A stretch of 42,261 nucleotides of DNA, taken from assembly GCA_000708835.1 (NCBI GenBank), contig DF237687.1:1-42261 (forward strand). The letters run 5' to 3'. The notes under the pieces were generated by a model. The model made no database searches, was not told the origin of the DNA, and was given only the letters and a program-made list of their open reading frames with translations. Made by a program: the position numbers and the translations under genes. Numbering within the stretch: the stretch's first letter is position 1; each line of letters begins with the position of its first letter. This DNA comes from Klebsormidium nitens (taxonomy: Eukaryota > Plantae > Klebsormidiophyceae). Of the stretch, positions 5,558 through 31,281 are shown in pieces.

Positions 5558-5983
5558 TCACTGCCTCGAAACATTCTGCCGATAAGCATTTGAGTCGCCT
5601 ATATTTCCCGGCGGAGAGAATTTTGCGACATACAAATATGCCCCGCCGTCCATCTGGGTCACACCTGCCCCAATCTTTCTGGTATTCTTCCACACAATCT
5701 GCGTGCCATGGCCGGTCTTGTTGTTGAATCCAGGCCGCTCGTAATCGTAGAGGTCCATCTCTTTTGCCCACCAGTCTATTGCGGTGCGCATGTCCGGCTC
5801 GAAGCTCCACACTTTTGCCAGGTTCTCCCCGTACTGTCGATCGGTTGAGTGAACAAACTGCTTCCGATTCGCCCAGTCCTGAGCGCACCTGGCAAGTGCG
5901 TCGTCCCAAACAAGGGCGGGCGCCCCGTGCCTGCGTCTGATATCATTGATGCGTGCAAGTACTTGTGCCTGATTCAGTGACAT
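5558..5983 (-). CDS. CAP/SCP/PR-1 superfamily protein, no signal peptide
   Basis: INDIRRRHGAPALVWDDALA-x-AQDWA, HS-x4-YGENL, W-x2-E-x3-YDY, TGHGTQIVWK and PPGN are CAP signature motifs. Confidence 0.92.
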   Translation of the reverse strand: MSLNQAQVLARINDIRRRHGAPALVWDDALARCAQDWANRKQFVHSTDRQYGENLAKVWSFEPDMRTAIDWWAKEMDLYDYERPGFNNKTGHGTQIVWKNTRKIGAGVTQMDGGAYLYVAKFSPPGNIGDSNAYRQNVSRQ

Positions 5984-6963: not shown

Positions 6964-8028
6964 ATGGCTTCTCCAGTCGTGCAAAAGTCGTACGTGTGCA
7001 ATCATGAAGATTGTGGTGCAGAGTACACGAGAAGTAGCAACCTTGCTCGACACAAACGAAAGCATACGGATGAAAAGCAGTTTGTGTGCTCCCACCTTAA
7101 CTGTGATGCTGCTTACACAAGGGTTGACGCCTTGAGATCTCACCAATGTACGCACTCAGATGAGAGGAACTTCGTGTGTTCTGAAGCGGATTGTGGCGCT
7201 GCCTTCAAGACAAGCAATCATCTTGTACGACACGAACTTGCACACACCGATAAATCACTGTCGAAATGCGCTTATCCAGGTTGTGGTGCCCTGTTGAAGA
7301 GAGGAGATACTCTTCTTCGGCACGAACGTACACATAATGATGAGAAGGCTCTCAAGTGCTCCTACTACATGGGCTGCAACGCTGCTTTTGCGAGGCGAGA
7401 CACTCTCACCTTACACGAACGGACGCATTCGGGCATAAAGCCATTCGCATGCAGCGAAGCTGGCTGCGATGAAGCATTTTCAAGGAGCGACGCCCTAAAG
7501 ACACACGTCTTCTATTACCACACGGAAAAAGGCCAGCAGCGTCGGAAGCGCGAGGAGGAGCGGATTGCCAAGCTTCTCACGACGGCCGGACTCCCTTTCA
7601 AGCGCGAGCATCATGTGACCTTTGACTGCTTGGGGGGCTCGTTCGCGCGTATCGACTTCATCCTCGACCACAAAGGGAAGATCATTGTGATTGAGGTTGA
7701 CGAGTACCAGCACGAAGGCTACGGAGTGGCTTGCGATGTGGCACGAATGCTGCAGATCTACGAGGCGTGGGCCATCGAAGGCAACTCACTGCCCGTGCAC
7801 ATCATTCGCTACAACCCTCATACGTTCCAGATTGATGGGAAGCGAGCAGCGGTCACACGCAAGATTCGAGAGGCACGTCTGCTCGAAGCCATCAATGAGG
7901 CAGCAGAGATGGAGTCAGAAGGTCTGCACATTCAATACATGTACTACGATCTGAAGGATGGCAAGCCAGCAATAATGGAGGATGAGGCATTTACCATTAC
8001 AGACTGTTGCCTGGACGCAATTGTGTGA
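6964..8028 (+). CDS. Six C2H2 zinc fingers fused to a Vsr/DUF559-like PD-(D/E)XK nuclease domain
   Basis: Six C-x4/5-C-x12-H-x3/4-H units with TGEKP-like linkers (TDEKQF, SDERNF, SGIKPF). C-terminal E...RIDF...IEVDEYQH...C-x3-RM...IIRYNP pattern, which I recognise from giant-virus endonucleases. Confidence 0.82.
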   Translation: MASPVVQKSYVCNHEDCGAEYTRSSNLARHKRKHTDEKQFVCSHLNCDAAYTRVDALRSHQCTHSDERNFVCSEADCGAAFKTSNHLVRHELAHTDKSLSKCAYPGCGALLKRGDTLLRHERTHNDEKALKCSYYMGCNAAFARRDTLTLHERTHSGIKPFACSEAGCDEAFSRSDALKTHVFYYHTEKGQQRRKREEERIAKLLTTAGLPFKREHHVTFDCLGGSFARIDFILDHKGKIIVIEVDEYQHEGYGVACDVARMLQIYEAWAIEGNSLPVHIIRYNPHTFQIDGKRAAVTRKIREARLLEAINEAAEMESEGLHIQYMYYDLKDGKPAIMEDEAFTITDCCLDAIV

Positions 8029-8155
8029 TGTGATCTGCTACACTTGTACAGTCAGTACAGTACAGCTTAAGTTTGAAAGGGTGCGGAATCTCTAATCAAT
8101 ATCACGGGCTTCCTATAACCAGTGTCCACAAATTTCCTCAACATACGAGTAAGTG

Positions 8156-9820
8156 ATGCAGTGTGCTTGCAGAACGAAACGGGGGCGACGCTGCTCCCTC
8201 CCCGCCAAAGCTAATTCCCGCTACTGTCGTCTCCACCATTTCTGTCATCAGAACGGTGCTGAGTCTCACGTTCCTGACGTAGCGCAGTGCATGTGCGTGG
8301 TCCAGACCGGTCACAGACAGTGTTCACGTGTAGCAGAGCCTGGCAGCACTCTCTGCTGGCAGCACAGATATTGCAGTAAGATCTTTCGAGGACAGACAAG
8401 ACCCCGATCGGGCAGGAGAAGCGGTGTGGGCACACAGACAGGAAGATTCAACAGAGGCACGCAGGTCGGAGGGGTCAACGTGGGCACACAGACAGGAAGA
8501 TTCAACAGAGGCACCCAGGTCGGTGGAGCCAACACGGGCACACAGGTAGGAAGATTCAACAGAGGCACACAGGTTGGGGGGACCAACATGGGCGGAGGTA
8601 CTGATGTTGGCACCGGCACGAATTCAATCACGCGTCCTGTAGTGAGCAGAGGGACGAGCGGACCCCGTCAAGTGACATTTGCAAGTACCGGCGTAGGCCC
8701 GAATGCAGGTCCGAATCGCGCGAGCTTTGGCACGAATGCACGCCCACTTCCAACCTTTGCAAGCACTGCAGCTGGCTCAGATGCAGCGCGGAGCCGTGGA
8801 ACGAGTGCACGCCCTCTCCCAAACTTTGCAAACAAGGCAGCAGGTCCAAATGCACGCCCGCCACGTGCAAACATGGGGACGGCTACCAATGTGGATGATG
8901 CTTGTGCCCTCCTCGCTCGAAGCATGCCATGTACGGACATCCTCAGGGTCCTTGGTATATGGGAACCGAGTCTGACAGAGAGTGAAGCAAGGTCTCGTTT
9001 TGAAAGCTGGGTTCAACAGTACACTGCCAGGTACGGTCAAACAGAGCTTCTGCGGAGAGTGAATGATTGCTTCCAGAGCGTTCGAGACAATGCATGGATT
9101 AACGCAGACGGAGGTCTGCTCAACGAGGAGGCTGATTTCGCCGAAGAAGACCCCCTTGCAGGTCTCGATCAGCCGAGGCGCCGGTACCACGGCCGGGCAA
9201 GGAGTGGGAACCAAGTTGCACCAAGGAGGGCGTTTGTTGGAAGCGGTCAAGGTGCTAGGCGGGAGGGGCTTTCTGCAGAGCTTCGGAGAATCAAGAAGGA
9301 AAGGGAACTTGAGGCTGAGATGAGTGAGTCTGAGGACTGTGAAAAGTTGCTTTTAAAGCACATTTTCAGGCGAACACGAGCTGAGACTAAGAAAGCATGG
9401 ATAAAATTCTCCCTACAATTCCATCCAGACAAGAATCCGGAACTGAACGCGAGGTTTGGAGTTTACTTCAGAAAGGTCAAGGACTGCTAGTATGACAGAT
9501 TCAAGGAAGAAACGTCCCATTGGGACGATGCACAGTGGGCAGCAGTTTACGACCACTACACAGCACACGTCCCATCCGGCCCTTCTCCTTCCATTCCAGA
9601 CCCCAGTCCTGGCCCAATTCCTGACCCAGTGATTCCGGATGACCCAATGCACGTCGACCCAATTCCTGCCCTAGAGGTCCCCAATGACCCAATGCAGGTC
9701 GACCCACAGGTGAGGGACAGGCGCAGAGCAGCTCCGCACGCTTTTCCAGACTATTGGGATATTGCAAACCGCTTGCCTGGCGCCAAAAGAAGTAGACGGG
9801 ACGGTGCTGGGTCTTCCTAA
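8156..9820 (+). pseudogene. Cys3His-motif / TQT-repeat / J-domain protein with in-frame TAG at 9488-9490
   Basis: Two N-terminal C-x6/7-G-x2-C-x9-C-x2-H motifs; 18-aa repeats; a degenerate J-like helical unit; KKAWIKFSLQFHPDKNPE (HPD). The frame stays open after the TAG (YDRFKEE...GAGSS) to TAA at 9820. Confidence 0.7.
8426..8590 (+). repeat. 54-bp coding tandem repeat, three copies (VGTQTGRFNRGTQVGGxN)
   Basis: Units start at 8426, 8480 and 8534. Confidence 0.92.
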
Positions 9821-9872: not shown

Positions 9873-10241
9873 GGGGTGGCCGCTCTTCACAGAATGTGAG
9901 CATGTACGGCAACGCTTTAGCAGATACTCTGGCACATGCGCATGCAAGGGCAGTGATGAACAGATGGTCCCGTCAAAGACAACCCAAGCAGAAAACGGGC
10001 CCCCCACTCGAACCAAACGTCAGTCTGCCCAGCAGTAAAAGACTTCGAGACGGTGTTGCCCCAAGCGTCCCTCGAAGGAGCGGAAGGACAAGAAGGCCCC
10101 CGGTTCAGTATGCAACCGGCGTTTACCCGCCACGGGGTGGCCGCTCTTCACTGAATGTGAGCATGTACGGCAACGCTTTAGCAGATACTCTGGCAGATGC
10201 GCATGCAAGGGCAGTGATGAACAGATGGTCCCGTCAAAGAC
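9873..10241 (+). repeat. ~108-bp near-identical direct repeat, 261-bp (87-codon) period
   Basis: GGGGTGGCCGCTCTTCAC...CCCGTCAAAGAC at 9873-9980 and 10134-10241. Confidence 0.9.
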
Positions 10242-12332
10242 ACGAGCAAGCCGAGCGAAACCGGGCCGACCACAACAGAGTCTGGCAAGAAGCGCTTCGG
10301 CGGCACGAGATGAGGAGGCAGGAGCTTCAGAGCAGGAAGAGAAAGACAGATGCTGGCGGGTCCAGTCCTCACAGGACCAAACGGACAAAAGGGAACGAGG
10401 CTGACCAGAGACAATCTGCCCGGGTCAGGTGGCAGCCCAACCAGTTGTCTTACAACCGTCTTGGACAGCAAAGGAGCGCGCGTACGAAAGCACAACGGAT
10501 GGTCCCCAAGCGCCCCAAGAAAACCGCTAAGAACACGCCTGGACTCTCCGGAGAGACAGCGGCGAGACAGCAGTCCGCGAANNNNNNNNNNNNNNNNNNN
10601 NNNNNNNNNNNNNNNNNNNNNNNNNNNNNNNNNNNNNNNNNNNNNNNNNNNNNNNNNNNNNNNNNNNNNNNNNNNNNNNNNNNNNNNNNNNNNNNNNNNN
10701 NNNNNNNNNNNNNNNNNNNNNNNNNNNNNNNNNNNNNNNNNNNNNNNNNNNNNNNNNNNNNNNNNNNNNNNNNNNNNNNNNNNNNNNNNNNNNNNNNNNN
10801 NNNNNNNNNNNNNNNNNNNNNNNNNNNNNNNNNNNNNNNNNNNNNNNNNNNNNNNNNNNNNNNNNNNNNNNNNNNNNNNNNNNNNNNNNNNNNNNNNNNN
10901 NNNNNNNNNNNNNNNNNNNNNNNNNNNNNNNNNNNNNNNNNNNNNNNNNNNNNNNNNNNNNNNNNNNNNNNNNNNNNNNNNNNNNNNNNNNNNNNNNNNN
11001 NNNNNNNNNNNNNNNNNNNNNNNNNNNNNNNNNNNNNNNNNNNNNNNNNNNNNNNNNNNNNNNNNNNNNNNNNNNNNNNNNNNNNNNNNNNNNNNNNNNN
11101 NNNNNNNNNNNNNNNNNNNNNNNNNNNNNNNNNNNNNNNNNNNNNNNNNNNNNNNNNNNNNNNNNNNNNNNNNNNNNNNNNNNNNNNNNNNNNNNNNNNN
11201 NNNNNNNNNNNNNNNNNNNNNNNNNNNNNNNNNNNNNNNNNNNNNNNNNNNNNNNNNNNNNNNNNNNNNNNNNNNNNNNNNNNNNNNNNNNNNNNNNNNN
11301 NNNNNNNNNNNNNNNNNNNNNNNNNNNNNNNNNNNNNNNNNNNNNNNNNNNNNNNNNNNNNNNNNNNNNNNAGTCAGATGGCAGCCCAACCAAATGGAAA
11401 CGCAAGTTTCACCGTACGAAAATGAAGCCGTAGGCTTCAATGTCGATGTGGACAATGCCGATCAGTTAGAAGCAGAAAGGCACGTGAATGCAGCTGCAAT
11501 AGCAGTAAACAGGGCCAGAAACTCAACAAACAGACCACTGCAGAACGAGAACCTTCGGAATGCTTCTGAACACTTGCAACAAGTACCTGGTGGAACGTTA
11601 CATTTGGATGTTGCACAGGAGGCTATCAATGATGCAATGAATGCCACGACCGGAGATGCTGCCGTGCAACACATGGATGTTGCTCAGACACACATTCAGG
11701 AGGAGCCACGAAGGAGTGCAAGGACAAGGAGGCCAGTGGTCCGGGTGGCAAACGCCGTTTACCCACCACGGGGTGGCCGTGCGGCACAGAATATAAACAT
11801 GTACCGTGACCCTCCGAGAAACAATCGGGCACGTGCCCACGTCCAGGCAGCCCTTGATGCGGTGGCAAACGGTCAAGGTAGGGCGATCGCAAATGCACAC
11901 ATCAAGCAGGCAGTCAACAATCTGCAACCTGATGCACCCAATGCCCGCCAAATTGCAGCCAGTGTGGTCGAGGCTAACAATGCAATCAATGCCCAAAGTG
12001 CGGCAGCTGCCGCTCAGCACGTAGCAAACGCTCAAGACCATTTGATGAATAATGCTGGCCCTTCCCAGCCCAACACAAGTGGCCAATGGACAAGTGCTAG
12101 AAGCAACTTTGGACCTCCCAGTGCAAGTCCCAGAACACCTTCGAACCACACCCTCATCACTTCAGATGGGCGGCCAACTACGTATGGCATCTTTAGAAGG
12201 ACCAGGAACTCGAGTGGACGCTTGCAGCATCATAAATCAGTCTCGAAGGGTGATGGTGAATATGGGTGGAAGGCCTGCTCCAAAGAAGCATACAACAAGA
12301 GCACTACAGCAAAGAAGGTGAACCTGTCCTAA
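9902..12332 (+). CDS. Arg-rich then Ala/Asn/Gln-rich repetitive protein spanning an assembly gap
   Basis: Open frame on both sides of the gap, with shared motifs PRRS[GA]RTRRP...VYPPRGGR and VRWQPNQ before and after it, suggesting a single gene. Confidence 0.6.
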
Positions 12333-13733: not shown

Positions 13734-14498
13734 TCAAAACGTCAACATCTGTCTGACATACTCCGCCTTCTTCAGAGTGTCAAAGGCAGCACGCTTCCTA
13801 CGGTTCTCAAACTTCCATAAGGGCTGCAAATTCTTGTAATGCCAACAGCAATAACTGTCAGTGACCTTGCTGAGGTCCCAGGATGCGCAGGGAATTGAGT
13901 GGTCAATCTCCCACAGAGTCCCGTAGTTGGACCAATGCATGCCCACCTCAAAACGAGACTCGAGGTATGTCCGCAAATAGTCTATATCACATGAAATGTA
14001 TCTAACTGTGGACATAGTCTTCTTGAGGGTACCGGACTGGTGGGCTGCCAGAGCACTGTGTATACGCGTTCTCATGTTTGCGCGCAATGCATAGTTGATG
14101 TCTGTCACCCGGCGCTGCCTCTTCCATTCCCGGTGGTACTCATTGACCTTGTCACGGTTCTTCTCATTGTATGCAGTCCTGGCAGCAGCTTCGCGGGCCG
14201 GGTTGTCACGCCTCCACTGTTGCTTCCTCGCAATGTAGCTGTCACGATGCTCATCATAGTACACTTGCTGATAAGCTCGAAACTTAGCATTGTCTGTCTG
14301 CCACTCCTTCTGATACTGAGGGTTTTTCTCCCTCCACCTCTTCTGTGCAGCCAAGTTGGCAGCTTGATTGTCCAGATACTTCTTCCGGTTGCATTCCCGG
14401 CACATCATGCTCTCCAGCTTGTCTTTGTTGCGGTTGTAGGTGGCAAACTGATGCAAGGGTTGTGTGATGTTACAGCGCTTGCACACTTTGGTCGCCAT
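13734..14498 (-). CDS. HNH homing-endonuclease-like protein of the chlorovirus/prasinovirus type
   Basis: N-terminal CKRC...CREC, a charged W/Y-repeat linker, then YLESRF-x2-GMHWSNYG...WEIDHSIPC-x2-WDL...WHYKNLQPLW-x2-EN-x2-K. Confidence 0.85.
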   Translation of the reverse strand: MATKVCKRCNITQPLHQFATYNRNKDKLESMMCRECNRKKYLDNQAANLAAQKRWREKNPQYQKEWQTDNAKFRAYQQVYYDEHRDSYIARKQQWRRDNPAREAAARTAYNEKNRDKVNEYHREWKRQRRVTDINYALRANMRTRIHSALAAHQSGTLKKTMSTVRYISCDIDYLRTYLESRFEVGMHWSNYGTLWEIDHSIPCASWDLSKVTDSYCCWHYKNLQPLWKFENRRKRAAFDTLKKAEYVRQMLTF

Positions 14499-14893: not shown

Positions 14894-15127
14894 ACATCAT
14901 GTCAAAGGAGAAGCATGAAACAGCATTTGTGGTTTGATGATTGAGAGCTTGAGCAGATGCACAGATACACAAGGGTTTGATACCCTCCCTACAATCAGAA
15001 ACATTACAGTACTTACAATCTGTGTCTCTGCGCAAGCCTGCTGTTTTCCTCGGCCTCAAACACTCCTTCATGTACACTGGTAGTCTCGTGCCTGTACTTA
15101 TTGTTATTTACATGCCTCACTCAACCC

Positions 15128-18318: not shown

Positions 18319-19296
18319 TCAGAGTATGTACTGGAGATGGGCGGGAGGGAGTATGACCTGGGCGCCGCATGCTCTTGGCCGCAGCTGCTGGATCGATGTT
18401 GCAAACGGATTTCTGAGCAGGAAATTGTGCTGCCAGCAGTAGATTGTGACCCCACAGGCCCTCCTCGTGCAGCACCGCCCTGTTGCAGCTGAGACTACGC
18501 TGCACCTTGCGTTGGGGATTGGTGCCAGGAGCCTCGTTCCCATTTCAGCCGGAGTATCCTGATAATTAACATTGTAAAAGGAAGCTATCTTGTCGTTCAG
18601 CGCCCTTCGCAACTTTCCTGTCGGGTACGCGTCCGCAAGAACGTTGGCTGCCAGCCGCGGGTTCACAATCCCAAATCGCAGACAGCACAGGGCAACCATG
18701 TTACACAGAAGTTGACAGCACTTTCTTCTGTCAAGCTCAGTCCCTTCAGCTGGCCATCGATGTTGTATTGCTTTGTTGTTGCTGACCCACACCGCTTGCG
18801 CTCTTGGGGCTGTTGTGTATCCTGGTACAAGAGCTGGCCGGTCATAAAAGCGGTCAAAAGCCTTAGTTGCAGGATCGAAGAACCATTGTACACGCCGCTT
18901 CAAGTCAAAAAGGAGGAAGGTAGCATGGGCTCTATCACGTTTCCCAACCTCTTTGTAGCGCAGGTACAGGTACACGATTGCGGATCTAACACCCCGCTCC
19001 CCACGGCATGCCTGCAACTCTGCCACAGTCCCTGGAGGAAGCTGAAACGCATCCACTTGAGCATCTATTGAGTTGTTTGGGCCTCCACACCAAACGTCCA
19101 TGGTCAGGTTCTCAGACCTTCTTTGGCAGACTGAATTCCACGGAGTGACAATCAGCCGGAAGAAGCGATGCCAGGCCTGCGTGTGATGAAAGTCGTCCCC
19201 CACATAGTCCGGGATATCGGTGAGGATCCCGTCCATGTATGTTCGAAACGCAGCCTTCAAGTCGTTCATACACCCAGCGGCAACCGCTGTGGCCAT
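18319..19296 (-). CDS. Putative CE-clan (Ulp1/adenain-like) cysteine protease with a C-terminal Cys3His motif
   Basis: H-D-Q-C order: HATFLLFD, FFDP, AIQ, KCCQLLC. C-terminal CSVVSAATGRCCTRRACGVTIYCWQH. Protease call is motif-level only. Confidence 0.5.
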   Translation of the reverse strand: MATAVAAGCMNDLKAAFRTYMDGILTDIPDYVGDDFHHTQAWHRFFRLIVTPWNSVCQRRSENLTMDVWCGGPNNSIDAQVDAFQLPPGTVAELQACRGERGVRSAIVYLYLRYKEVGKRDRAHATFLLFDLKRRVQWFFDPATKAFDRFYDRPALVPGYTTAPRAQAVWVSNNKAIQHRWPAEGTELDRRKCCQLLCNMVALCCLRFGIVNPRLAANVLADAYPTGKLRRALNDKIASFYNVNYQDTPAEMGTRLLAPIPNARCSVVSAATGRCCTRRACGVTIYCWQHNFLLRNPFATSIQQLRPRACGAQVILPPAHLQYIL

Positions 19297-19410
19297 GAGT
19301 GGTTATACAGATAGGGGAGAAATAAGTGGTAATCACTGTTGCATGTACAGTGAGCAATGTTGTTAACTTGTCCATGCCATCATAACATAATCATGTCTTG
19401 TAAGTCACAG

Positions 19411-20815
19411 CAGACTTGCGCATAAACACGCATGGCGAGCAATTTTCAAAAGTATCTGAAGATTTTGGAGGCCCCTTTTTTGACTATAGGGAGGGGGTAC
19501 GAATCCTCTGCTCCTCCGTGTTTATGCGCAATCATGAGGGGCATGGGTGATAGAGCACACAGTGCAAATACCGACTCAAGCCAAGCATACCGCCGAGAAC
19601 AAGATAAGATAGTGTAAGAGACAGCTGACTTGCGCATAAACACGGATGGCGAGCAATTTTCAAAAGTATCTGAAGATTTTGGACCCCCCTTTTTCGCTAT
19701 AGGGAGGGGGTACGAATCCTCTGTTCCTCCGTGTTTATGCGCAATCATGAGGGGCATGGGTGATAGAGCACACAGTGCAAACACCGGCTCAGACCAAACA
19801 TACCGCCAAGAACAAGATAAGACATTGTAAGAGACAGCTGACTTGCGCATGAACACGGATGGCGAGCAATTTTCAAAAGTATCTGAGGATTTTGGACCCC
19901 CCTTTTTCGCTATAGGGAGAGGGTACGAATCTCTCTGTTCCTCCGTGTTTATGCANNNNNNNNNNNNNNNNNNNNNNNNNNNNNNNNNNNNNNNNNNNNN
20001 NNNNNNNNNNNNNNNNNNNNNNNNNNNNNNNNNNNNNNNNNNNNNNNNNNNNNNNNNNNNNNNNNNNNNNNNNNNNNNNNNNNNNNNNNNNNNNNNNNNN
20101 NNNNNNNNNNNNNNNNNNNNNNNNNNNNNNNNNNNNNNNNNNNNNNNNNNNNNNNNNNNNNNNNNNNNNNNNNNNNNNNNNNNNNNNNNNNNNNNNNNNN
20201 NNNNNNNNNNNNNNNNNNNNNNNNNNNNNNNNNNNNNNNNNNNNNNNNNNNNNNNNNNNNNNNNNNNNNNNNNNNNNNNNNNNNNNNNNNNNNNNNNNNN
20301 NNNNNNNNNNNNNNNNNNNNNNNNNNNNNNNNNNNNNNNNNNNNNNNNNNNNNNNNNNNNNNNNNNNNNNNNNNNNNNNNNNNNNNNNNNNNNNNNNNNN
20401 NNNNNNNNNNNNNNNNNNNNNNNNNNNNNNNNNNNNNNNNNNNNNNNNNNNNNNNNNNNNNNNNNNNNNNNNNNNNNNNNNNNNNNNNNNNNNNNNNNNN
20501 NNNNNNNNNNNNNNNNNNNNNNNNNNNNNNNNNNNNNNNNNNNNNNNNNNNNNNNNNNNNNNNNNNNNNNNNNNNNNNNNNNNNNNNNNNNNNNNNNNNN
20601 NNNNNNNNNNNNNNNNNNNNNGCATACCGCCAAGAACAAGATAAGACATTGTAAGAGACAGCTGACTTGTGCATGAACACGGATGGCGAGCAATTTTCAA
20701 AAGTATCTGAAGATTTGAGAAGACCTTTTCTGACTATAGGGAGGGGGTACGAATCCTCTGTTCCTCCGTGTTTATGCGCAATCATGAGAGGCATGGGTGA
20801 TAGAGCACACAGTGC
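19411..20815. repeat. 213/214-bp tandem array; each unit carries a ~118-bp core bounded by 17-bp inverted repeats
   Basis: Unit starts at 19416, 19630, 19843 and, after the gap, 20667. TTGCGCATAAACACGGA pairs with TCCGTGTTTATGCGCAA. At least four units visible; the gap could hold about three more. Confidence 0.95.
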
Positions 20816-20985
20816 GAACACCGCAATGGCAGTGCACCGTTCGTGCATCGGTGCTTAGGGCGACAGATCAAGCCACAAGTAGCAACTTTCTGGCTAGTAT
20901 AGAGGCTGCTCTCAGGGAAGAGGCGGCCCCTGTGTCAACACTTAGGGCGATCGCTCCGGTCGAGATTGGCAACTCTGCTGGCGTC

Positions 20986-22881
20986 ATGGAAGGAGCTCTG
21001 ATTGATCGCGTCCTCGCACACCCGGCCGTTCAGGCCATTGACGTCAGCCAGCTGGAGGGTTGGCAAGACCTTGGGAGGGTATTCGTGAGGGCATTTAATG
21101 ACAAGGGCCAGCGCTACCCAATCGATTTTGACAACGCGTACGTTTGGCTGCAGTACGGAAGGAAGGACAGTGCTCTAAGGGCTCTGAAGTGTCGTCTTGG
21201 GGAAGTTACCGACTACATAATCATTCTTGGAAAGAACCAAGAATCCAAGTCAGAGAACCGAGGGCCGGCTCCGGACAAATACTACCTGACGATGGAGGCG
21301 TTTTTCATGTTTGCATTACGGGCTTCTGGGGAGAGGGGGGACATCGTCAGAAGATTCTTCATAGCCGTGAGGGAAGCATACTTTGAGACGATACAGGAGC
21401 TGGAGGACAACCCCAACACCCCTGCCCGTGTTACTCTGGACCGACACGAGAAGTTTGTGGACGGCCAACTCATGGAGTTGGGAAAAGAATGTTCCAAGGC
21501 CATCAGGGTAGAGGCCCAAGTGCGGGACAGGCTGGCTAGCAAGCTGGTGGGGGCTCGGACAGAGGTTCGCTGTGAGTACGGTATGATCGACATTCTGACA
21601 GACACAGAGGTGATCGAGGTGAAGGTGTATCACAAGTGGAAGCACGCTTTGGGACAGTGCCTATCATACGGTCTCAGCTTCTCAGACCGGCAGATCCGGA
21701 TACATCTCTTTGCAAACTTCAGCGATTGGGACGATGCTAACAAGCAGAGGGGTGCCATCCTTGAGATCTGCTCGAAGTTTGGCGTTAAAGTGACACTCGA
21801 GAGGCTCGAGGCGGCCCCTTCTGTGTCCACACTTAGGGCGATCAATCCAGCCGGAAATTGCAACTGCTCAGCCGACATGGAGGTAGCCCTTGCCGACCGC
21901 GTCCTCGCACACCCAGCCGTTCAGGCCATCGACGTCAGCCAGCTGGACGGCTGGGAAGAGCTGGGGAAGGTATTCGTAAAATGCTTTGATGAGAAGGGCC
22001 AGTGCTACCCGATCGATTTCGACGACGCATACGTGTGGTTGCAGTACGGGCGGAAGGACGGAGCTCTTCGAAGTATGAAGGCTCGTTGCACAGAAGGCGC
22101 GGATTACACATATGTCCCAGGGGGGGTCCAACGAGATGGGGAAGGGGTCTACGTCGCATTCCAACCGGACAAGTACTATCTCACTGTGGACGCCTTCGAG
22201 CGGTTTGCGATGGCAGCACAGACAGAGGCTGGCGAGCGAGTTCGAGCCTTCTTCAGGGCAATCAGGGACGCCTACTTGGAGCTCACTGCAAGCGGTCCAC
22301 AGCCCGCCATCATTTCGCCAGAGGATCCGCTGCTTCCCAAGAAGCAAGGCGTCTTGTTCAACGGCACCGAGGTCTTGCTTGCGAAGGAAAAGACCCGGCA
22401 GTTGGAGATCGAGGCAAACGCACGGGTGTGCATCGCTGAGATGGACCATGAGTACAGGATGGCCACTCTGAGCCCGAAGCCCCCTCGCAAGCGGAGTCGA
22501 ACCTCTGCAGGAGACCGCCAGGACGTTCAGGGGACTTCTGAGGACGTGCAGGAGCCCTCGGACCAGCAATTGGCGCCCCAGGCCCCGCATCCGCGCAGCA
22601 CGGCCGCTGTCGAGGCCGTCATCAAGCACTTTGTTGCCGAGCACTGCACTGTGGACTCCACGGAGATTGTGGCCTCGAGCTCCTTCCTCGAGAGGCTCGT
22701 CGCCACCATGTACGAGGGCCAGCGCGCTCCCTCCGCAAGGGCCGTGGGAGTTGTCATGCATAAGTTAGGCTACGAAGGGTGCGAGGTCAAGCAAGATGGC
22801 AAGAGATGCCGGGCCTTTTTCGGTCTGAAGCTCGCTCAAGCAGCAGCTACGCCGACCGAGCAGCGTGCAGACCTACCGTAG
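20986..22881 (+). CDS. Tandem MSV199/KilA-N-like DNA-binding protein with an internal PD-(D/E)XK-like domain and a C-terminal D5-type winged-helix-like domain
   Basis: Two copies of PIDFD-x-AYVWLQYGRKD-x-ALR...DY...DKYYLT-x2-AF; GMIDILTDTEVIEVK-x3-KWKHALGQ-x3-YG; C-terminal F-x2-EHC...S...G...G-x-R-x2-FGLKL. Open from 20797; first ATG 20986. Confidence 0.78.
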   Translation: MEGALIDRVLAHPAVQAIDVSQLEGWQDLGRVFVRAFNDKGQRYPIDFDNAYVWLQYGRKDSALRALKCRLGEVTDYIIILGKNQESKSENRGPAPDKYYLTMEAFFMFALRASGERGDIVRRFFIAVREAYFETIQELEDNPNTPARVTLDRHEKFVDGQLMELGKECSKAIRVEAQVRDRLASKLVGARTEVRCEYGMIDILTDTEVIEVKVYHKWKHALGQCLSYGLSFSDRQIRIHLFANFSDWDDANKQRGAILEICSKFGVKVTLERLEAAPSVSTLRAINPAGNCNCSADMEVALADRVLAHPAVQAIDVSQLDGWEELGKVFVKCFDEKGQCYPIDFDDAYVWLQYGRKDGALRSMKARCTEGADYTYVPGGVQRDGEGVYVAFQPDKYYLTVDAFERFAMAAQTEAGERVRAFFRAIRDAYLELTASGPQPAIISPEDPLLPKKQGVLFNGTEVLLAKEKTRQLEIEANARVCIAEMDHEYRMATLSPKPPRKRSRTSAGDRQDVQGTSEDVQEPSDQQLAPQAPHPRSTAAVEAVIKHFVAEHCTVDSTEIVASSSFLERLVATMYEGQRAPSARAVGVVMHKLGYEGCEVKQDGKRCRAFFGLKLAQAAATPTEQRADLP

Positions 22882-23673: not shown

Positions 23674-25821
23674 TCATGAGCCATCCCACGTTTGGAAGCA
23701 CCTAAACTCGTTCTCAGCAGCAACCTCCCTCACAAGTTGCTCAAAGGGCCCGTTAAGCCGGTCCTTCCGGATGCAGATGTCCCGCATGAACGTGTCGCCA
23801 GAATCTCGAGGGAACTCGGCACGCCTGCCGAGCTCTGGATTGTTGCTGGCTCCAGGCATCACGCACAGATACCTAAAGACATCGACATGTTGCTCGTTCT
23901 GGGGCAGATGAGTGTGGCTTTTGAAGCGCGCAGCCCGTGCAATTGCCTGATTCTCGCTCGTAGAATTCCATTGCGGCTCGAGCATGTGGAAGTAGCGCGT
24001 GCCTTTGAGATTAAGACCTTCGCCACCTGCCTCTGAAAGTATGAGAACGTGCAGATCGTCATTGTTGAAAGCTTCGATTGCATCAGTCCGTTGCTTCAGT
24101 GACTTTGTGCCAATAATCTCACCGAAAGGGATGTTTTCGGCTGCCAGCAGCATCCTCAGGGTGCCCACTCCGTGCATGTTCACCGAGTGCGTGAAAAAGA
24201 CTGTTTTGCACCGCCGCCAGGTGTCATCGTCGGGGGACGGCCCCAAACGGCTCACGAGGTGCCTTACAGCAAGCTTCAGCTTCGGACACACAATCTGCAT
24301 GTTGCCTCCCGCGTGATTCGCAGCCGCTACGCCGGCAGCCAATTCAATGCCCGCCACGTCTGGCGGTGAGACCAGGACACCATCCCGGTAGACAAGGCTG
24401 TTACAAATGGCGCGGGCGGTGTCATAAAATCGCATCAGCTCGGGGTCTGGCTCTCCCGTGAGGTCTGCATCATAGTATGATTGAGGGGGCTCACCGTGAG
24501 CCTCTTGGGCCATCACCTGGGAAGGGGTCATCCTCACGATTGTGTCCCGGATAGTCATCCTCGGGTACCGCAGGTCATCGGCTGGCGATCTGTATGCCAA
24601 GACTGCGCAACTCAAAGCGGCCCTCATGAGGGCTCGCTGCGCCATGCCATCATTTCCAAAGACCGTGTTGAACCCCTTTCGGCTCGTGGGCATGCATCCT
24701 GGCTTGATCATGTCGAGGATTGGAGCAATATCGCTGGGTTGATTTACAACGGGTGTACCGCTGAGCAGCACAATCTTGCCAGCTGCACGCCCGCCCACCG
24801 CAATACGGTCTGAGCGCTGTTTCCCCGAGTTACGTGCATTGTGAACCTCATCAATCACGAGGATTGCATCCCTGCAAAAGGCCTTGATGTGTTCTTGAGG
24901 CATCTTGTCAAACGAGTTGTGAGTTCCGAGATGGATCTCACCCACGTTGGCAATCGGTGCATACCGCTGCATCTCACTCTCCCAAGTGTCCAGCATCGAG
25001 GCAGGTGCCAGGATGACGGTCCGGCCATACTTACCCGGAAATTGTCGCCTAAGGTTGTCGATGCAAGCGATCGCAGTCAGTGTCTTCCCGGCTCCCATCG
25101 AGTAGAGCAGGAGCGCACCCCTGACATGAGGTTGCAACAGCAGGCAGACGGCCTGAATTTGATGACGGTGGAGCCTCCACGGAGGGCCGGGCTGTTCAGC
25201 AGCCTCCAGGTTCACATTAGCTGCAACCGGCCCATATATCGCCCTAACATTCCGGAGGCCCGTGCAAGCAATCTCGTTCTCCATGTTTGCTTGCGTCGGG
25301 GCTTGCAAGGCGGAGTTGTTGGCAGCTTTCGAACGCCTGTACTTGGGTTCGAGATGCGGCCCAGGGCCAGGCTCCCGGTGCTCAGGACGTATCGGTGTTC
25401 TCCCTGTGGCATAGTTCATGTACCGTTGGATCAGCTCCAGTTGTTCGTTGTCCCGCTTTCGTTTTCTGGACCGCGCTGTTTTGTTGTTGGGGTTGTTGTT
25501 CTGCCTTGACGGCCCCGCACCTCGAGCGTTTGCTTGACGGTGGAAGAAGCCAGACGCCAATCTTTTTTGAAAGTTTGCTTCAGACATGGCGTTTCCTGCT
25601 CGCTGATTGGGGCTGTGAGTCCGTCTCGAGGGCCCCGCACCTCGTGCGTTCTCCTGACGGTGGAAAAAGCCAGATTCCAACCTTCTCTGCAGGTTTGCAT
25701 CAGACATGGCGTTTCGGGCGTATGCTTCTCGCCACGGTGTCTCATCAATCGAGGCTTCATCAGCTTCACTATTGCTGTTGAGCACGATGACTTCCTTTCC
25801 TTTTCTTTGACGATTGGACAT
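23674..25821 (-). CDS. NCLDV D6/D11 (VETF small subunit / NPH-I)-like SF2 helicase
   Basis: HQ motif, YSMGAGKT (I), APAS (Ia), IDEVHN (II), LSGTP (III), EAGGEGLNLKG (V), EPQWN...QAIARAARFKSH-x2-LP (VI); intronless. Confidence 0.9.
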   Translation of the reverse strand: MSNRQRKGKEVIVLNSNSEADEASIDETPWREAYARNAMSDANLQRRLESGFFHRQENARGAGPSRRTHSPNQRAGNAMSEANFQKRLASGFFHRQANARGAGPSRQNNNPNNKTARSRKRKRDNEQLELIQRYMNYATGRTPIRPEHREPGPGPHLEPKYRRSKAANNSALQAPTQANMENEIACTGLRNVRAIYGPVAANVNLEAAEQPGPPWRLHRHQIQAVCLLLQPHVRGALLLYSMGAGKTLTAIACIDNLRRQFPGKYGRTVILAPASMLDTWESEMQRYAPIANVGEIHLGTHNSFDKMPQEHIKAFCRDAILVIDEVHNARNSGKQRSDRIAVGGRAAGKIVLLSGTPVVNQPSDIAPILDMIKPGCMPTSRKGFNTVFGNDGMAQRALMRAALSCAVLAYRSPADDLRYPRMTIRDTIVRMTPSQVMAQEAHGEPPQSYYDADLTGEPDPELMRFYDTARAICNSLVYRDGVLVSPPDVAGIELAAGVAAANHAGGNMQIVCPKLKLAVRHLVSRLGPSPDDDTWRRCKTVFFTHSVNMHGVGTLRMLLAAENIPFGEIIGTKSLKQRTDAIEAFNNDDLHVLILSEAGGEGLNLKGTRYFHMLEPQWNSTSENQAIARAARFKSHTHLPQNEQHVDVFRYLCVMPGASNNPELGRRAEFPRDSGDTFMRDICIRKDRLNGPFEQLVREVAAENEFRCFQTWDGS

Positions 25822-25857
25822 CTTTAAAAAAGACACACAAATTCTCATAGCTTAGAG

Positions 25858-25977
25858 GCTTGCGCAGATGCGCGGATGAGCAGGTGATGTCAACCCCCCT
25901 ACTATAGTGAAAAAGAGGGGATCACAGATTTTGTAATACTTTTGAAAGTTGCGCTCCATCTGTGTATGTGCGTAAGC
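25858..25977 (+). repeat. Solo copy of the IR-bounded element, 36 bp upstream of the helicase start codon
   Basis: GCTTGCGCA...TGCGTAAGC ends; CAACCCCCCTACTATAGTGAAAAAGAGGGG...ACTTTTGAAAGTTGCGCTCCATC core. Confidence 0.85.
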
Positions 25978-26114
25978 TTGTCATACATTACAACATTGCA
26001 TTATTGCACAGGAGTAAACCCGTGCATAAACCCGTGCAGAAACACCAAACTGAGAGTATGGGTATGAGAGTAGGGTAGTATGCCTGTGGCAGTCTCTGTT
26101 ATTGTTACACGCAC

Positions 26115-26405
26115 TTACAATTTAGCTTGTAAACTACTTGCCGAACTGAAATCAACGTGGCAGGAAGTCTCTGCCATTGCTACGGGGTTGGGGTTCTTGC
26201 GTGTTATATATTTCTCTCTCAAACTTTCTTCCTGTTCTTTCATACCTTCCCCCACCCGTTTCCAGTACCGGACACACTCTTCGTCTCTGCACATACGCGG
26301 GTGGACCTCGATACATTGTTGCAACGTAAAACCACCATCCCTGCGAAACCACCAAAATTCCAGGAATCTTTTGGCATCGCGGCGGGGGAACAAATATTTA
26401 AACAT
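26115..26405 (-). CDS. Hypothetical protein, possibly with an upstream exon
   Basis: MFKYLFPRRDAKRFLEFWW...EEQEESLREK-like helical ORF, preceded by a TTGCAG acceptor-like site. Confidence 0.35.
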   Translation of the reverse strand: MFKYLFPRRDAKRFLEFWWFRRDGGFTLQQCIEVHPRMCRDEECVRYWKRVGEGMKEQEESLREKYITRKNPNPVAMAETSCHVDFSSASSLQAKL

Positions 26406-27343
26406 ACACCTGCAAGCCCAGAGTAAGTGGATCAGAAACCAACATTGAGAGGGGCATTGGTGGGACAAAGGAGGGCCATTGACAGACCAGCATATGAAAG
26501 GTGGCACCTTGATGAACTTTGGATGAATGCGGCAATATTCCAGGAAATGAGCTTCTGCTTCAAGTCAGAAATGAGACGAAGCTTGCACCCATCGGTTTTG
26601 CAAGAGCTTACGTGTCCATGCAGTGAGGTCGGTTGCATAATACCCCGCTCAGCTGAGTGAATCGTTGAGACAGATCATGCCCCCCCCCCCCCAGCCGAGA
26701 GGATGACCAGTCCAATTATCTGCAATTGAAATCTCAAACAGGTGACTCTTATACAAGAGAGGGATACCCAAGCGGAAGCGAACTTAGGCAACCTAGGCTC
26801 GTGCCAAATTGGAGTCTAAAAGAATGGCCGTAAAGGTGAGTCCTGCTGCTAGTCAACGGCTCAGTCTTGAACGAAGAGTCTTGAAGGTTATACATTTGGT
26901 CGTCAGAATGCCGTTGATAGCAAAACATCGATGGCTTAGAGGGACCGTCGCCCGGATAATCGTGACACGTCGGCCAAAGGCAGGATGTTGAGATCTGTGA
27001 CACGTCACGTCTGACCTGGACAAGTGTCAACTAACTTCGTTCTTAAACAGGTCCCGAATGGTAATGACGAGATCGACGGCTCAGATTTTACTTCCTTGGA
27101 GGTCCTAGGTCGAAAGGGTTCAGTCTTGGTCGCGCAGAGCTGCGAGCAGAGCTGTCTGGGCATCTCACGCGGCATAGCTTCACATCCACCTTGTTCCGGA
27201 TTGGAGGCATCTGAGGAGTAAATATAACTGTAGGAGTCTCTTCCAATGAAAGTTGGTGAGCAGATCTCAACCAATCGAGTAACTTATCGATATCGAAATT
27301 ACTAATCTCATAAACTGCTACGCGTGATAGTCTTCGTTTTTAT

Positions 27344-27700
27344 ATGCCCCTAAATGTCATGGCGACCCAAGTTATCCCCTTACAAAGAGTGTTTGCAATG
27401 CACAGTGGCACGATGTGCCCCCCAAAGTCGCCTACTCCACAGCATATGATCGGCCGTTTTTGTATCAAGGTGACCACAGACCTTATTGATAGCACTGGAT
27501 TGCGACGCATGACATTCAAGGGGTATGGGCCTGATGAGGCTTTCATCAAGCAAAAGACGGTAGCCGCTCGTGACAGGCACAAGCGGGAGGAAGACTCTGT
27601 GACGGAGCCGTTGATAACGACAATTGGTGTGTGTGATCTTTGTGACAACCGTATTGAAGTGCACAACATCAAATCCAGATCATGCTACCATCTGCTATAA
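27344..27700 (+). CDS. Hypothetical protein with a C-terminal CxxC
   Basis: ATG ORF of 118 aa, convergent with the next gene (19-bp gap); CDLC motif. Confidence 0.45.
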   Translation: MPLNVMATQVIPLQRVFAMHSGTMCPPKSPTPQHMIGRFCIKVTTDLIDSTGLRRMTFKGYGPDEAFIKQKTVAARDRHKREEDSVTEPLITTIGVCDLCDNRIEVHNIKSRSCYHLL

Positions 27701-27719
27701 GGTCTTGCGTGAGTACAAG

Positions 27720-28100
27720 TCAGTGAACCTCATTGAGATCCTCATCAACGGCAGAACCATAACGGCTTAACAGATCATCCTTCATGCTCTCAAAGCTTTG
27801 CCAAGCAGCGAAGCCTCCTTTGGCCCTTCGTTTCTCGAGGATCCTTTGTAACACAAGGTTCTGCATGGCGGCCTTTTCTCTCTCATTCGAGGGAACCTCT
27901 TCAGCTCGCAAGCCTGCTGCTGCTGGGTTGCTGGCAATCTCCGAGACCTCTGCAGCAATGACATTCTCGACAGCTAGGCAGGTCATGATCCGCTCCTTGC
28001 GCGCTTCCTCCATTGCTTCCCAGAGGGCCTCTGCCATCTCCAGTGCAAGGAGCTGCTGTGGGGGGCTCAGGTCCTCCGTGGTCCGGAACTCGGTGTCCAT
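27720..28100 (-). CDS. Hypothetical alpha-helical acidic protein
   Basis: 126-aa ATG ORF, E/A/L-rich helical pattern; divergent from the kinase gene. Confidence 0.55.
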   Translation of the reverse strand: MDTEFRTTEDLSPPQQLLALEMAEALWEAMEEARKERIMTCLAVENVIAAEVSEIASNPAAAGLRAEEVPSNEREKAAMQNLVLQRILEKRRAKGGFAAWQSFESMKDDLLSRYGSAVDEDLNEVH

Positions 28101-28126: not shown

Positions 28127-29819
28127 ATGATCCATGACAACGCACCAAGCAGGATGCACCGGTACAGCAGATCAGATGAAATCCTTGGTTCATCTGAATT
28201 CAAGTCCGTCTACTCTGGCTTTGACCACCAGCAGGGGGTGGCAATTGCCTGGTCTGTGATTGACCTAAAGTCAGGGGACTGCACGGACCAGCTGGTGCGG
28301 ACGCTCCAGCTCATCCAGAGGGTTGAGCACGACCACATCGTGCGCATCCATGACTGGTTTCTGGACCCAGATTCGGGAAAGATGCACGTGGTCACTGACC
28401 TCTTTAGGCCCGGGAACCTGCGGGACCTGCTGAAGGCCGCTGGCACGATAGATGAAATCGTGCTGAGAAGGTGGGGGTGCGACCTGCTGACCGCTATCTC
28501 CTTTGTTCACAGCCTCGATGGCCCTCTCTTCATCCGGAACCTGCGCATGGGAAACGTGGGCNNNNNNNNNNNNNNNNNNNNNNNNNNNNNNNNNNNNNNN
28601 NNNNNNNNNNNNNNNNNNNNNNNNNNNNNNNNNNNNNNNNNNNNNNNNNNNNNNNNNNNNNNNNNNNNNNNNNNNNNNNNNNNNNNNNNNNNNNNNNNNN
28701 NNNNNNNNNNNNNNNNNNNNNNNNNNNNNNNNNNNNNNNNNNNNNNNNNNNNNNNNNNNNNNNNNNNNNNNNNNNNNNNNNNNNNNNNNNNNNNNNNNNN
28801 NNNNNNNNNNNNNNNNNNNNNNNNNNNNNNNNNNNNNNNNNNNNNNNNNNNNNNNNNNNNNNNNNNNNNNNNNNNNNNNNNNNNNNNNNNNNNNNNNNNN
28901 NNNNNNNNNNNNNNNNNNNNNNNNNNNNNNNNNNNNNNNNNNNNNNNNNNNNNNNNNNNNNNNNNNNNNNNNNNNNNNNNNNNNNNNNNNNNNNNNNNNN
29001 NNNNNNNNNNNNNNNNNNNNNNNNAACGCCCCCGTGTTGGTTCATCAGGACGTTGGGGTCATCAAGCTGGATCTGCTGAGCGTTTCGTTTCTGTTCACAT
29101 CCCACGGGTATGCCAGGGAGAGGGTGGAGGCGATCAGGGTCATGTCTCCAGAGCATTTGCTAGGCCCAAGCGATGAGAAGGTGGATATCTACGGGTTTGG
29201 CATGGTCATGCTGGAGGCAGCCACCAGGCTCCAACCGTACAAGGAATGCAGCACGGTTGCAAGCCTCTACGACAAGGTGACACACTTTCAGCCCCCAAAA
29301 GCTCTTGGTGAGGTAAAGGACAAAGGCCTGCGCGACATCATAAAGAGGACGTTGCTGAGGGCGTGCGAGCGGCCCTCCGCACACGAGTTGCTCAACCTCC
29401 CCTACTTTCGATTCGAGCCTAGCCTCTGGGGTATGCATGTGGTGGTAATTGACGACGACCCAGTGAACCTCAGGATGTGCACCAGGCTTTTGGAAAAGGA
29501 GGGCGTCACTGTTGTCCCCTGTAACACTTTCAACGAAGTGATCGCCCTACTGTCCACCCGGGCTTTTGCAGCTCTCATCACTGACATTATTATGCCAATG
29601 ATGAACGGTTTCGAGATGAGCGCAAGGTTGCGGCAGCTGAGGTACAGCTCGCTGATGATCATTGGGATCAGTGCGCAGGAGAGAAAGGACCTTGACGAAC
29701 GCATGGCAGAGAGTGGGATGGATGCGTTTGTGCAGAAGCCCTTTACATTCGAGAACCTGCGGGTTGCATTTACAAGGGCCCGCCTCAGAAGAACTTCGAG
29801 CGCCAAGGAAGTTGCTTAG
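28127..29819 (+). CDS. WNK-like pseudokinase fused to a C-terminal response-regulator receiver (REC) domain
   Basis: RY-x2-DEILG-x3-FKSVY-x2-FD-x3-G-x2-IAW, VDIYGFGM-x2-LE...PYKEC...LYDKV and R-x-SAHELL-x2-P-x-F match WNK kinases. REC: VVVIDDD, LITDIIMPMMNG, IIGISA, FVQKP. A gap lies between subdomains VIb and VII. Confidence 0.88.
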
Positions 29820-29833
29820 GGACCGTTTCATTC

Positions 29834-30630
29834 AGGTATGGCCTTACATACATACATATTGGCAACTGGGAACCAAAGGGGAAACTCTGTACTACTAATC
29901 TGTTATATTCTCCNNNNNNNNNNNNNNNNNNNNNNNNNNNNNNNNNNNNNNNNNNNNNNNNNNNNNNNNNNNNNNNNNNNNNNNNNNNNNNNNNNNNNNN
30001 NNNNNNNNNNNNNNNNNNNNNNNNNNNNNNNNNNNNNNNNNNNNNNNNNNNNNNNNNNNNNNNNNNNNNNNNNNNNNNNNNNNNNNNNNNNNNNNNNNNN
30101 NNNNNNNNNNNNNNNNNNNNNNNNNNNNNNNNNNNNNNNNNNNNNNNNNNNNNNNNNNNNNNNNNNNNNNNNNNNNNNNNNNNNNNNNNNNNNNNNNNNN
30201 NNNNNNNNNNNNNNNNNNNNNNNNNNNNNNNNNNNNNNNNNNNNNNNNNNNNNNNNNNNNNNNNNNNNNNNNNNNNNNNNNNNNNNNNNNNNNNNNNNNN
30301 NNNNNNNNNNNNNNNNNNNNNNNNNNNNNNNNNNNNNNNNNNNNNNNNNNNNNNNNNNNNNNNNNNNNNNNNNNNNNNNNNNNNNNNNNNNNNNNNNNNN
30401 NNNNNNNNNNNNNNNNNNNNNNNNNNNNNNNNNNNNNNNNNNNNNNNNNNNNNNNNNNNNNNNNNNNNNNNNNNNNNNNNNNNNNNNNNNNNNNNNNNNN
30501 NNNNNNNNNNNNNNNNNNTTCTCCAAAAAGTCAATGACAATATAAGGTCTTTTTGGAGGTATGGCCTTACATACATACATATTGGCAACTGGGAGCCAAA
30601 GGGGAAACTCTGTACTGCTAATCTGTTATA
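29834..30630. repeat. 112-bp tandem repeat with an internal hairpin, spanning an assembly gap
   Basis: GGTATGGCCTTACATACATAC...AATCTGTTATA occurs on both sides of the gap. Full unit 30519-30630 contains CTCCAAAAAG-18nt-CTTTTTGGAG. Confidence 0.8.
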
Positions 30631-31281
30631 ATTCCTTCCCTGGAGAAGAAAAAAAATATAACAGATTGTAGTACACAAGTCATGGACCTCCGACCTGTTT
30701 GCTGATATGTATGTAACTAAGGGTCCCTCCTGTGAATCATAAGGCAAGAAGGGTGGGATGGGTGACTCACCTGCTCGCCCCAGCTGCCTATTCCGCAGGT
30801 CCCTTCCCCCTTAAGCCCTTGATTGAATGTTGCGACCCGCTCCTGCTTGTGCTGGCAGGTCACCAGCGGTTCTTGTTGGTCCGCCCTCCTGGGATGCTTG
30901 CATGGACGTCTCTGAGGTGCGTTCTGGAGGGTGTGTTGCAGTGGGGGAGGGCTTCCTGAAAATGACAGAAGAATTAGAAATGTTGAGGCCTTTTGAGCTT
31001 ATATATCAAAAGTTGGATGGCGTGCAGGGGCGGCTGCACGGCAAGGGCTGGCGCCTGCTGCCAGAACATGCCAATGGACGCAACCGCAAGTCGCTCAAAC
31101 ATACAGGGAACGGGTGGAATGCGCGACTTGCCTGCCTTCATTCTACCCGCTCCATGCATGCTTCTAGCCCTTGTGGAGATTGCCACCCTGACCGCCCTTC
31201 TGAGAGGTCTTGTTAGCCTTCCCTTGCCGGTCTGCAGACCATCTGAAGGCCAAAGATCTTTTCCTTTAAAATGTTCAAGAC

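Follow-up and report, generated by a model that had tools for sequence, protein, structure and literature searches.

Does the tandem repeat that fills one intergenic spacer of Klebsormidium nitens scaffold DF237687.1 serve the genes around it, or is it a passenger that multiplies between them? The scaffold (42261 bp of assembly GCA_000708835.1, with six runs of at least 59 N and five single N letters), analysed in full and here called the window, carries a short element with an inner inverted repeat, which we term family 1, both as an array and as single copies. A preliminary description had likened this family to the homologous regions (hrs) of baculoviruses, and proposed either an origin, enhancer or recombination element of a virus or a MITE (miniature inverted-repeat transposable element) family amplified in tandem. 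We compared family 1 across approximately 200 kb of related DNA and 14 kb of clear host DNA. In our best reading, family 1 belongs to a giant-virus lineage of phycodnavirus-like type that has been endogenized in the K. nitens genome or has at least been assembled with it. What it does there is less certain; we consider it probable, if only just, that family 1 is a virus-borne intergenic repeat, selfish or spread by recombination, whose inverted-repeat arms are a protein site.

The array was real by two methods. Tandem Repeats Finder called it at 19399-19954 (period 213, 2.6 copies, 93% matches, score 961), and nhmmer with one unit as query placed units at 19384-19583, 19585-19796 and 19799-19955, with a further unit beyond an assembly gap at 20622-20823. 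Relative to the orientation of the single copies, in which all strands of copies are given, the array lies on the minus strand. Its left part (19384-19955) comprises 2.7 units and is cut by the gap (19956-20621; 666 N, an estimated length); its right part (20622-20823) is the last unit, which covers unit positions 1 to 202 in register, and similarity ends at 20823. The units are 90-95% alike. The left side breaks off at unit position 157 and the sequence to the right begins again at position 1, so the true length of the gap must be 56 + n x 213 bp (482 or 695 bp, the latter for n = 3), compared with 666 N. With a gap of such a length the two sides are in register, and they form one array, probably with about three hidden units, the number being uncertain. 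The array runs from unit position 14 at its start to position 202 at its end, which gives a copy length of approximately 190 bp. The array fills the divergent spacer between the start of a 325-amino acid (aa) open reading frame (ORF; start at 19296, minus strand) and the ATG of an MSV199-like gene (20986), as had been described, and the repeat is non-coding, with dispersed relatives.

The two solo copies that had been reported, at 1.3 kb and 25.9 kb, were both recovered by nhmmer, at 1255-1384 and 25850-26004 (E values of 1e-9 to 1e-15 with single-copy queries). Both lie on the plus strand, opposite to the array. The 1255-1384 copy (core 1263-1372) is diverged, and the genes that flank it have no assigned identity. 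Annotation look-ups over the first 13 kb, made to check the intronic location that had been described, gave no recorded product. The 25850-26004 copy (core 25861-25974) had been placed upstream of a superfamily 2 (SF2) helicase, and it abuts the first ATG (25848) of an SNF2-family helicase ORF. We also found a degenerate single copy with an internal deletion at 14939-15046 (plus strand, core 14950-15034, profile E = 9.5e-9), 441 bp upstream of an endonuclease VII-like ORF. A profile search of the window detected no family 1 copies beyond these four loci.

Each array unit holds a core of 115 bp, rather than the approximately 118 bp first proposed, with inverted-repeat arms of 15-17 bp at its edges. 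In the best-preserved core, that of unit 2 (19630-19744, minus strand), perfect 17-bp arms (19630-19646 and 19728-19744) stand 81 bp apart; unit 1 has arms of 15 bp, and the last unit has 17-bp arms with two mismatches. Across the family, a copy spans approximately 170-213 bp and a core 105-120 bp, and the arms are 15-21 bp long and approximately 80 bp apart. A 23-nt degenerate pattern derived from the copies matched the window six times and 100 shuffles not once. The inverted repeats had been called terminal. Their presence and their length of 17 bp in unit 2 held, but similarity between copies extends 35-70 bp outside the arms in both the array and L002, a second K. nitens scaffold, which makes the inverted repeats subterminal. 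The inverted repeat was better than in 200 shuffles in 10 of 18 copies and has decayed in the others. Among the decayed ones is the 1255-1384 copy, one of the solo copies said to keep spacing and arms, which has lost the integrity of its left arm.

The most conserved columns are the right arm and two adjoining short motifs, and the core motifs quoted in the preliminary description are present on the minus strand. The subfamilies differ by an 8-bp insertion or deletion (indel), because of which MAFFT mis-registers the left arm of the L002 subfamily; the arms were therefore compared position by position by script. In this comparison, two arm positions of the array lineage differ from other copies, and they do so on both arms. 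That the same two derived bases occur on both arms indicates that the inverted repeat was restored after change and is being kept. A symmetric protein site would explain this co-variation as readily as a hairpin or cruciform would, and it does not separate them.

Where does the family occur? At least 25 copies of 105-213 bp were found in the related DNA. Seven are in L002 (168-192 bp, all in one orientation, including a two-unit tandem at 206-bp spacing), three in L003, a Joint Genome Institute (JGI) metagenome contig of 62.6 kb, and four in the L011 contig; L007 carries one full copy, whose arms of approximately 35 bp are unlike the others, and a 46-bp remnant, L008 carries half a copy, and L009 and L013, which are more distantly related, have none. 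Copies were seen only between ORFs that are backed by homology or a family match, both 5′ and 3′ of genes, and they occupy 5′-5′, 5′-3′ and 3′-3′ spacers in both orientations relative to the next gene. Every copy found is located in giant-virus-like DNA. Neither the leucine-rich-repeat (LRR) part of the window nor L010, a 14-kb stretch with a host LRR gene from a K. nitens scaffold of 160 kb, contains a copy; the LRR query that led to this host control yielded a single K. nitens paralogue. In a metagenome scan, three matches without wider similarity were rejected as chance.

The four metagenomic contigs with family 1 (L003, L007, L008 and L011) share genes with the window. L003 has the methyltransferase, the 325-aa ORF, the MSV199-like gene and the SNF2 gene in largely the same order, with 73-81% DNA identity in the same-order coding blocks and 70-81% across all shared coding blocks. 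L007, L008, L009, L011 and L013 are dense in intronless ORFs, among them ThyX, TFIIS, YqaJ, TBP, thioredoxin, hybrid histidine kinases and a D5-type primase, and L002 encodes three MSV199-like segments, zf-MYND, patatin and dCMP deaminase. Close relatives of the SNF2 and MSV199-like proteins are confined to a few contigs. Several distinct Phycodnaviridae-like inserts have been published for K. nitens (Gallot-Lavallee and Blanc, PMC5294986), and we regard at least 13.7-30 kb, the center of the window, as giant-virus-like DNA.

Cores share 90-95% identity inside the array and 73-91% inside L002. Window copies show 52-70% identity with those of L002, which belongs to the same host assembly, and up to 82% with those of L003. 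As the window copies are nearer to L003 than to L002, the subfamilies follow the virus-like lineage and not the host genome, which is not what would be expected of a host MITE that invaded after integration. A copy or part-copy lies upstream of SNF2 in four contigs: at 25850-26004 in the window, 15401-15601 in L003, 9789-9834 in L008 (half) and 7725-7770 in L007, where the 46-bp remnant matches sequence flanking the L003 copy. The copies in the window, L003 and L008 share the same relative orientation, and the SNF2 helicases of L003, L007 and L008 are 64-75% identical to that of the window.

Other positions are particular to one lineage. The L003 spacer that matches the array consists of 72 unaligned bp with no copy, compared with 1639 bp in the window, and the array is thus new and lineage specific. 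The 25.9-kb copy is more like the L003 copy at 11.9 kb (78%, E = 8e-26) than the L003 copy at the matching position (72%, E = 8e-7), which points to copying or conversion between sites. L003 also has a copy between its MSV199-like and histone genes; in the window that spacer is missing and the histone gene is found at another place, which puts this L003 copy at a rearrangement point.

In our main reading, family 1 would spread between intergenic spacers by recombination or nuclease-driven copying and not by classical cut-and-paste transposition. Arrays would then arise from copies through unequal recombination or slippage during replication. The inverted repeat would be bound by a dimer, either a DNA-binding protein or a nuclease, that the element itself encodes, and the candidate binders are the multi-copy MSV199-like genes that adjoin copies. 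The nucleases encoded nearby are the endonuclease VII-like ORF and, by its motif, the MSV199-like protein; no transposase or autonomous partner was found in the window or in 12 loci.

Several points weigh against a virus-borne repeat that spreads in this way. Confinement to virus-like DNA is a small-sample statement. Two exact-pattern scans of IMG/VR did not find the repeat, there was no close SNF2 relative in that database, and we know of no free virus that carries family 1. The mechanism of copying is one that we infer, and the two-sided arm change is one lineage event, not many. A lost arm, half or internal piece is seen in the 15.0-kb copy of the window and in L007, L008 and L011, and such losses are as expected of unconstrained DNA. 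Finally, a copy lies near the MSV199-like gene in all four loci with a close homologue (at 163 bp in the window, 66-73 bp in L002, approximately 60-85 bp in L003 and approximately 600 bp in L011). This adjacency is suggestive, with a rough p of ~0.02 if copies are limited to spacers, a value estimated by hand for loci that were retrieved through the MSV199-like genes themselves.

The strongest competitor is a cis-acting element of the kind first proposed, in which family 1, by analogy with hrs, would be under selection as an enhancer or bidirectional promoter, an operator, an origin or a recombination site. We regard this as possible but clearly less probable. The dispersed loci and tandem units, each with an inverted repeat, are as claimed; the geometry of the inverted repeat, unlike the compact hr palindrome, and the presence of tandem units at one window locus of four are not. 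Selection would be consistent with an array that sits in the divergent spacer between two gene starts, with the orientation kept upstream of SNF2 while the helicases diverged to 64-75% identity, with the conservation of the right arm and its two neighboring motifs, and with a predicted RFX-type winged helix in the adjacent protein. Between the window and L003, moreover, copies are 71-78% identical in DNA, on a par with the flanking coding DNA (70-81%), and other spacers do not align. However, the array is absent from L003, the closest relative; L009 and L013 lack copies and L008 has only half of one; relative to the gene downstream, copies in the window and in L011 are oriented differently; copies also occur in 3′-3′ spacers of L002 and L003; and decayed copies are common.

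A candidate binding protein is the neighboring MSV199-like protein. Its label comes from a source's name for the paralogue P0003 ("MSV199 domain-containing"). Pfam gave no match for the whole protein, four parts of it, P0002 or P0003, even at E = 10, and a PDB sequence search of the MSV199-like protein gave no match; two anti-repressor PHROG families matched it weakly. The AlphaFold model was poor (predicted local distance difference test, pLDDT, 61), and one domain of approximately 75 residues gave a usable match: the best structural matches were RFX-type winged-helix DNA-binding domains (TM-score of 0.71-0.72 on the target, E = 0.02-0.05). The model thus lends weak support to DNA binding. 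A D..E-x-K pattern, read from the translation, lies between two copies of an N-terminal-type domain, and by this motif alone the protein could be a nuclease. The two N-terminal-type domains stem from an internal duplication with 77% DNA identity (20917-21195 and 21808-22086), and the L002 paralogue matches the second half alone of the window gene.

A stronger form of the same idea is a true hr-type system of a streptophyte-alga giant virus. Here the arms would serve as operators or origins for the MSV199-like, nuclease and winged-helix proteins encoded alongside, with one protein-DNA pair responsible both for regulation and for the copying of the repeat and its own gene to new spacers. We think this unlikely.

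We consider it improbable that family 1 is a host MITE, or a MITE-derived satellite, that invaded the viral insert after integration and was then amplified in tandem. The part of that proposal that stands is the description: the copies are short, non-coding and dispersed, they contain inverted repeats, and they form a local tandem array, which is specific to K. nitens. L003 also holds a host-looking part and a (AAAACCCT)15 block, such that the relatives may be inserts too. Two hallmarks of a MITE failed: the inverted repeats are not terminal, as similarity passes beyond them, and no transposase was seen in the window or the loci. No target-site duplication was shared in the flanks of 15 copies or in those of the seven L002 copies, and none was common at either the arm ends or the outer limits of similarity, which are fuzzy. 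Between genes, the spacers of the window and L003 gave no alignment, and no exact empty site was available. Host-wide copies with target-site duplications, the pattern named earlier as that of an ordinary MITE, were not seen in the 14 kb of host DNA, which like the LRR part of the window was free of copies. A host origin also sits poorly with the different subfamilies (52-70% identical) on two K. nitens scaffolds, with window copies nearest to a metagenomic relative, and with the copy or part-copy upstream of SNF2 in four contigs.

A structured non-coding RNA gene, a short interspersed element (SINE) or a source of hairpin small RNAs is more doubtful still. Such readings would draw on the long-range stem of unit 2, whose DNA fold has z = -5.5 to -5.9. 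This value is owed to the outer stem, which is the only robust fold feature; other copies have z from -0.2 to -3.4, and the inner 70-80 nt of 10 copies folded no better than shuffles in 8. The self-pairing of C and G runs that had been proposed for the inner part likewise did no better than shuffled sequence (z about 0) and is lost in relatives; the G run is absent from the 11.9-kb copy of L003. RNAalifold gave no consensus structure on the MAFFT alignment, in which one arm is mis-registered. An RNA gene was rejected after searches that gave no Rfam match, either at gathering score for the whole window or at E = 1 for the array, and no tRNA-like part.

Least of all do we credit a protein-coding repeat or an assembly artefact. 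In their favor, the unit length of 213 is divisible by 3, one frame of the minus strand stays open over 169 of 190 codons, and a gap lies inside the array. Against them, by our estimate approximately 1 in 5 random 71-codon units has an open frame, units of the array diverge by 5-10%, and assemblies made independently also contain the family. A coding repeat was discarded on the 8-bp indel between subfamilies, single copies that do not keep the frame and the lack of any protein family match. As the array is non-coding, the length of its gap raises no question of reading frame.

The genes around the copies are as follows. The 325-aa ORF (18319-19296, minus strand), which has no assigned function, is transcribed away from the array; its start lies 88 bp from the array, and it is approximately 81% identical in both DNA and protein to its L003 counterpart. 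On the other side, the MSV199-like gene (KFL_007380050; 20986-22881, plus strand) begins 163 bp downstream of the array. The SNF2-family helicase ORF (724 aa) occupies 23674-25848 on the minus strand. The endonuclease VII-like ORF (254 aa; 13734-14498, minus strand) matches phrog_1035 with E = 3e-14 and adjoins the degenerate copy downstream. A histone-fold ORF lies at 4957-5544, and its homologue in L003 is found between the MSV199-like and SNF2 genes. Further window ORFs encode a class-24 methyltransferase and a C2H2/NERD protein.

Some annotated gene models fuse separate intronless ORFs, as in the case of SNF2 and upstream pieces in the window (23674-28100) and of patatin and dCMP deaminase in L002 (11631-14397). 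The annotated SNF2 model is 839 aa long, whereas relatives match the 724-aa ORF alone; the 25.9-kb copy falls inside the span of the model, yet just 5′ of the first ATG of the ORF. Because the fused models place repeat copies in supposed introns, they have the look of artefacts that arise when virus-like DNA is annotated with eukaryote-style gene calling. The 5′ end of the SNF2 ORF itself contains a repeat of approximately 120 bp in 2 to 2.8 copies (window 25487-25715; L003 14865-15206; L007 approximately 7959-8265).

We noted other repeats and gaps in the window. The gap at 28562-29024 (463 N) lies inside a protein kinase/response-regulator gene; the sequences on its two sides align with neighboring positions of L011 (one up to 4045, the other from 4042), so that the true gap is probably near zero. 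Just downstream of this gene, a second repeat family, with a self-complementary unit of approximately 170-180 bp that matches itself on both strands, straddles the N gap at 29914-30518 (29830-29911 and 30520-30731). In L011, the second family (7631-8015 and 8410-8750) alternates with family 1 copies in a 1.6-kb spacer upstream of an MSV199-like gene. An LRR-coding array with a 72-bp period (33398-36325) is interrupted by gaps at 33605-34496 and 35448-35506, and shares 65-77% DNA identity with a host LRR gene of scaffold DF237125.1. At 9873-9981 and 10134-10242, shortly before the gap at 10582-11371, there is a direct repeat of 109 bp with 98% identity. The interstitial (AAAACCCT) x 15 block of L003, at 5559-5680, separates a part whose gene calls are short and fragmented (glycosyl hydrolase 9, CAP) from the virus-like part; there is no such block in the window or the other loci. 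We take the block to resemble the type of telomere repeat reported for Klebsormidium.

Much of the size change and rearrangement of giant-virus genomes comes from repeat families, few of which have been described outside amoeba viruses. How such repeats spread without a transposase is an open question, for which family 1 can be traced across several diverged relatives with a candidate partner gene beside its copies. The position upstream of SNF2 in four contigs, next to positions that are lineage specific, makes comparative sequence work feasible. More practically, the repeats explain at least two assembly gaps of the scaffold and mark giant-virus-like DNA in Klebsormidium assemblies.

Among known systems, the pithovirus M1/M2 repeats are best described as the closest analogue of family 1, with baculovirus hrs alike in layout only. 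Like hrs, family 1 occupies dispersed intergenic loci of a large DNA virus, consists of direct repeats with an inverted repeat, and has at least one position common to relatives. However, hrs have units of approximately 64-70 bp with a compact, imperfect palindrome of 24-30 bp, and their loci are mostly tandem (PMC4535591, a study of SpltNPV-II from which we take the definition and function of hrs). By description, family 1 is set apart by a unit of 213 bp, arms 81 bp apart and single copies at three of the four window loci. Moreover, hrs are defined by origin and enhancer activity and by IE-1 binding, whereas family 1 is known from sequence alone and the virus phyla are unrelated.

Pandoraviruses are said to harbor "submariner" MITEs, reportedly described by Sun et al. 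in 2015, which resemble family 1 in being short inverted-repeat elements multiplied in a giant-virus genome. According to a summary in PMC10664404, these pandoravirus elements are kin to a transposon found in the amoeba that hosts the virus, and MITEs generally carry inverted repeats at their termini and, in most cases, a short target-site duplication. For family 1, in contrast, kinship to a host transposon, terminal repeats and target-site duplication were not found. In eukaryotic tandem satellites derived from MITEs or other transposons, the same unit exists as singles and as head-to-tail arrays. Family 1 likewise occurs as single copies and as an array, and L002 has a two-unit tandem with 206-bp spacing; it differs from these satellites in tracking a virus-like lineage and in having no known autonomous partner.

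The pithovirus M1 and M2 repeats are clustered in intergenic DNA and vary between syntenic relatives; some of their sites show no target-site duplication, and a transposase is not known for them (Rigou et al., 2023, PMC10664404). Compared by description, they differ from family 1 in their arms, which are 47-54 bp around 37 bp as opposed to 15-21 bp around approximately 80 bp. Family 1 also covers far less DNA, and its context is phycodnavirus-like, with a streptophyte alga as host. The likeness lies in the arrangement: both are non-coding units of approximately 100-150 bp with inverted repeats, in intergenic clusters, with multi-copy genes in the same regions (PMC10664404), and, like M1 and M2, two repeat families alternate within one L011 spacer.

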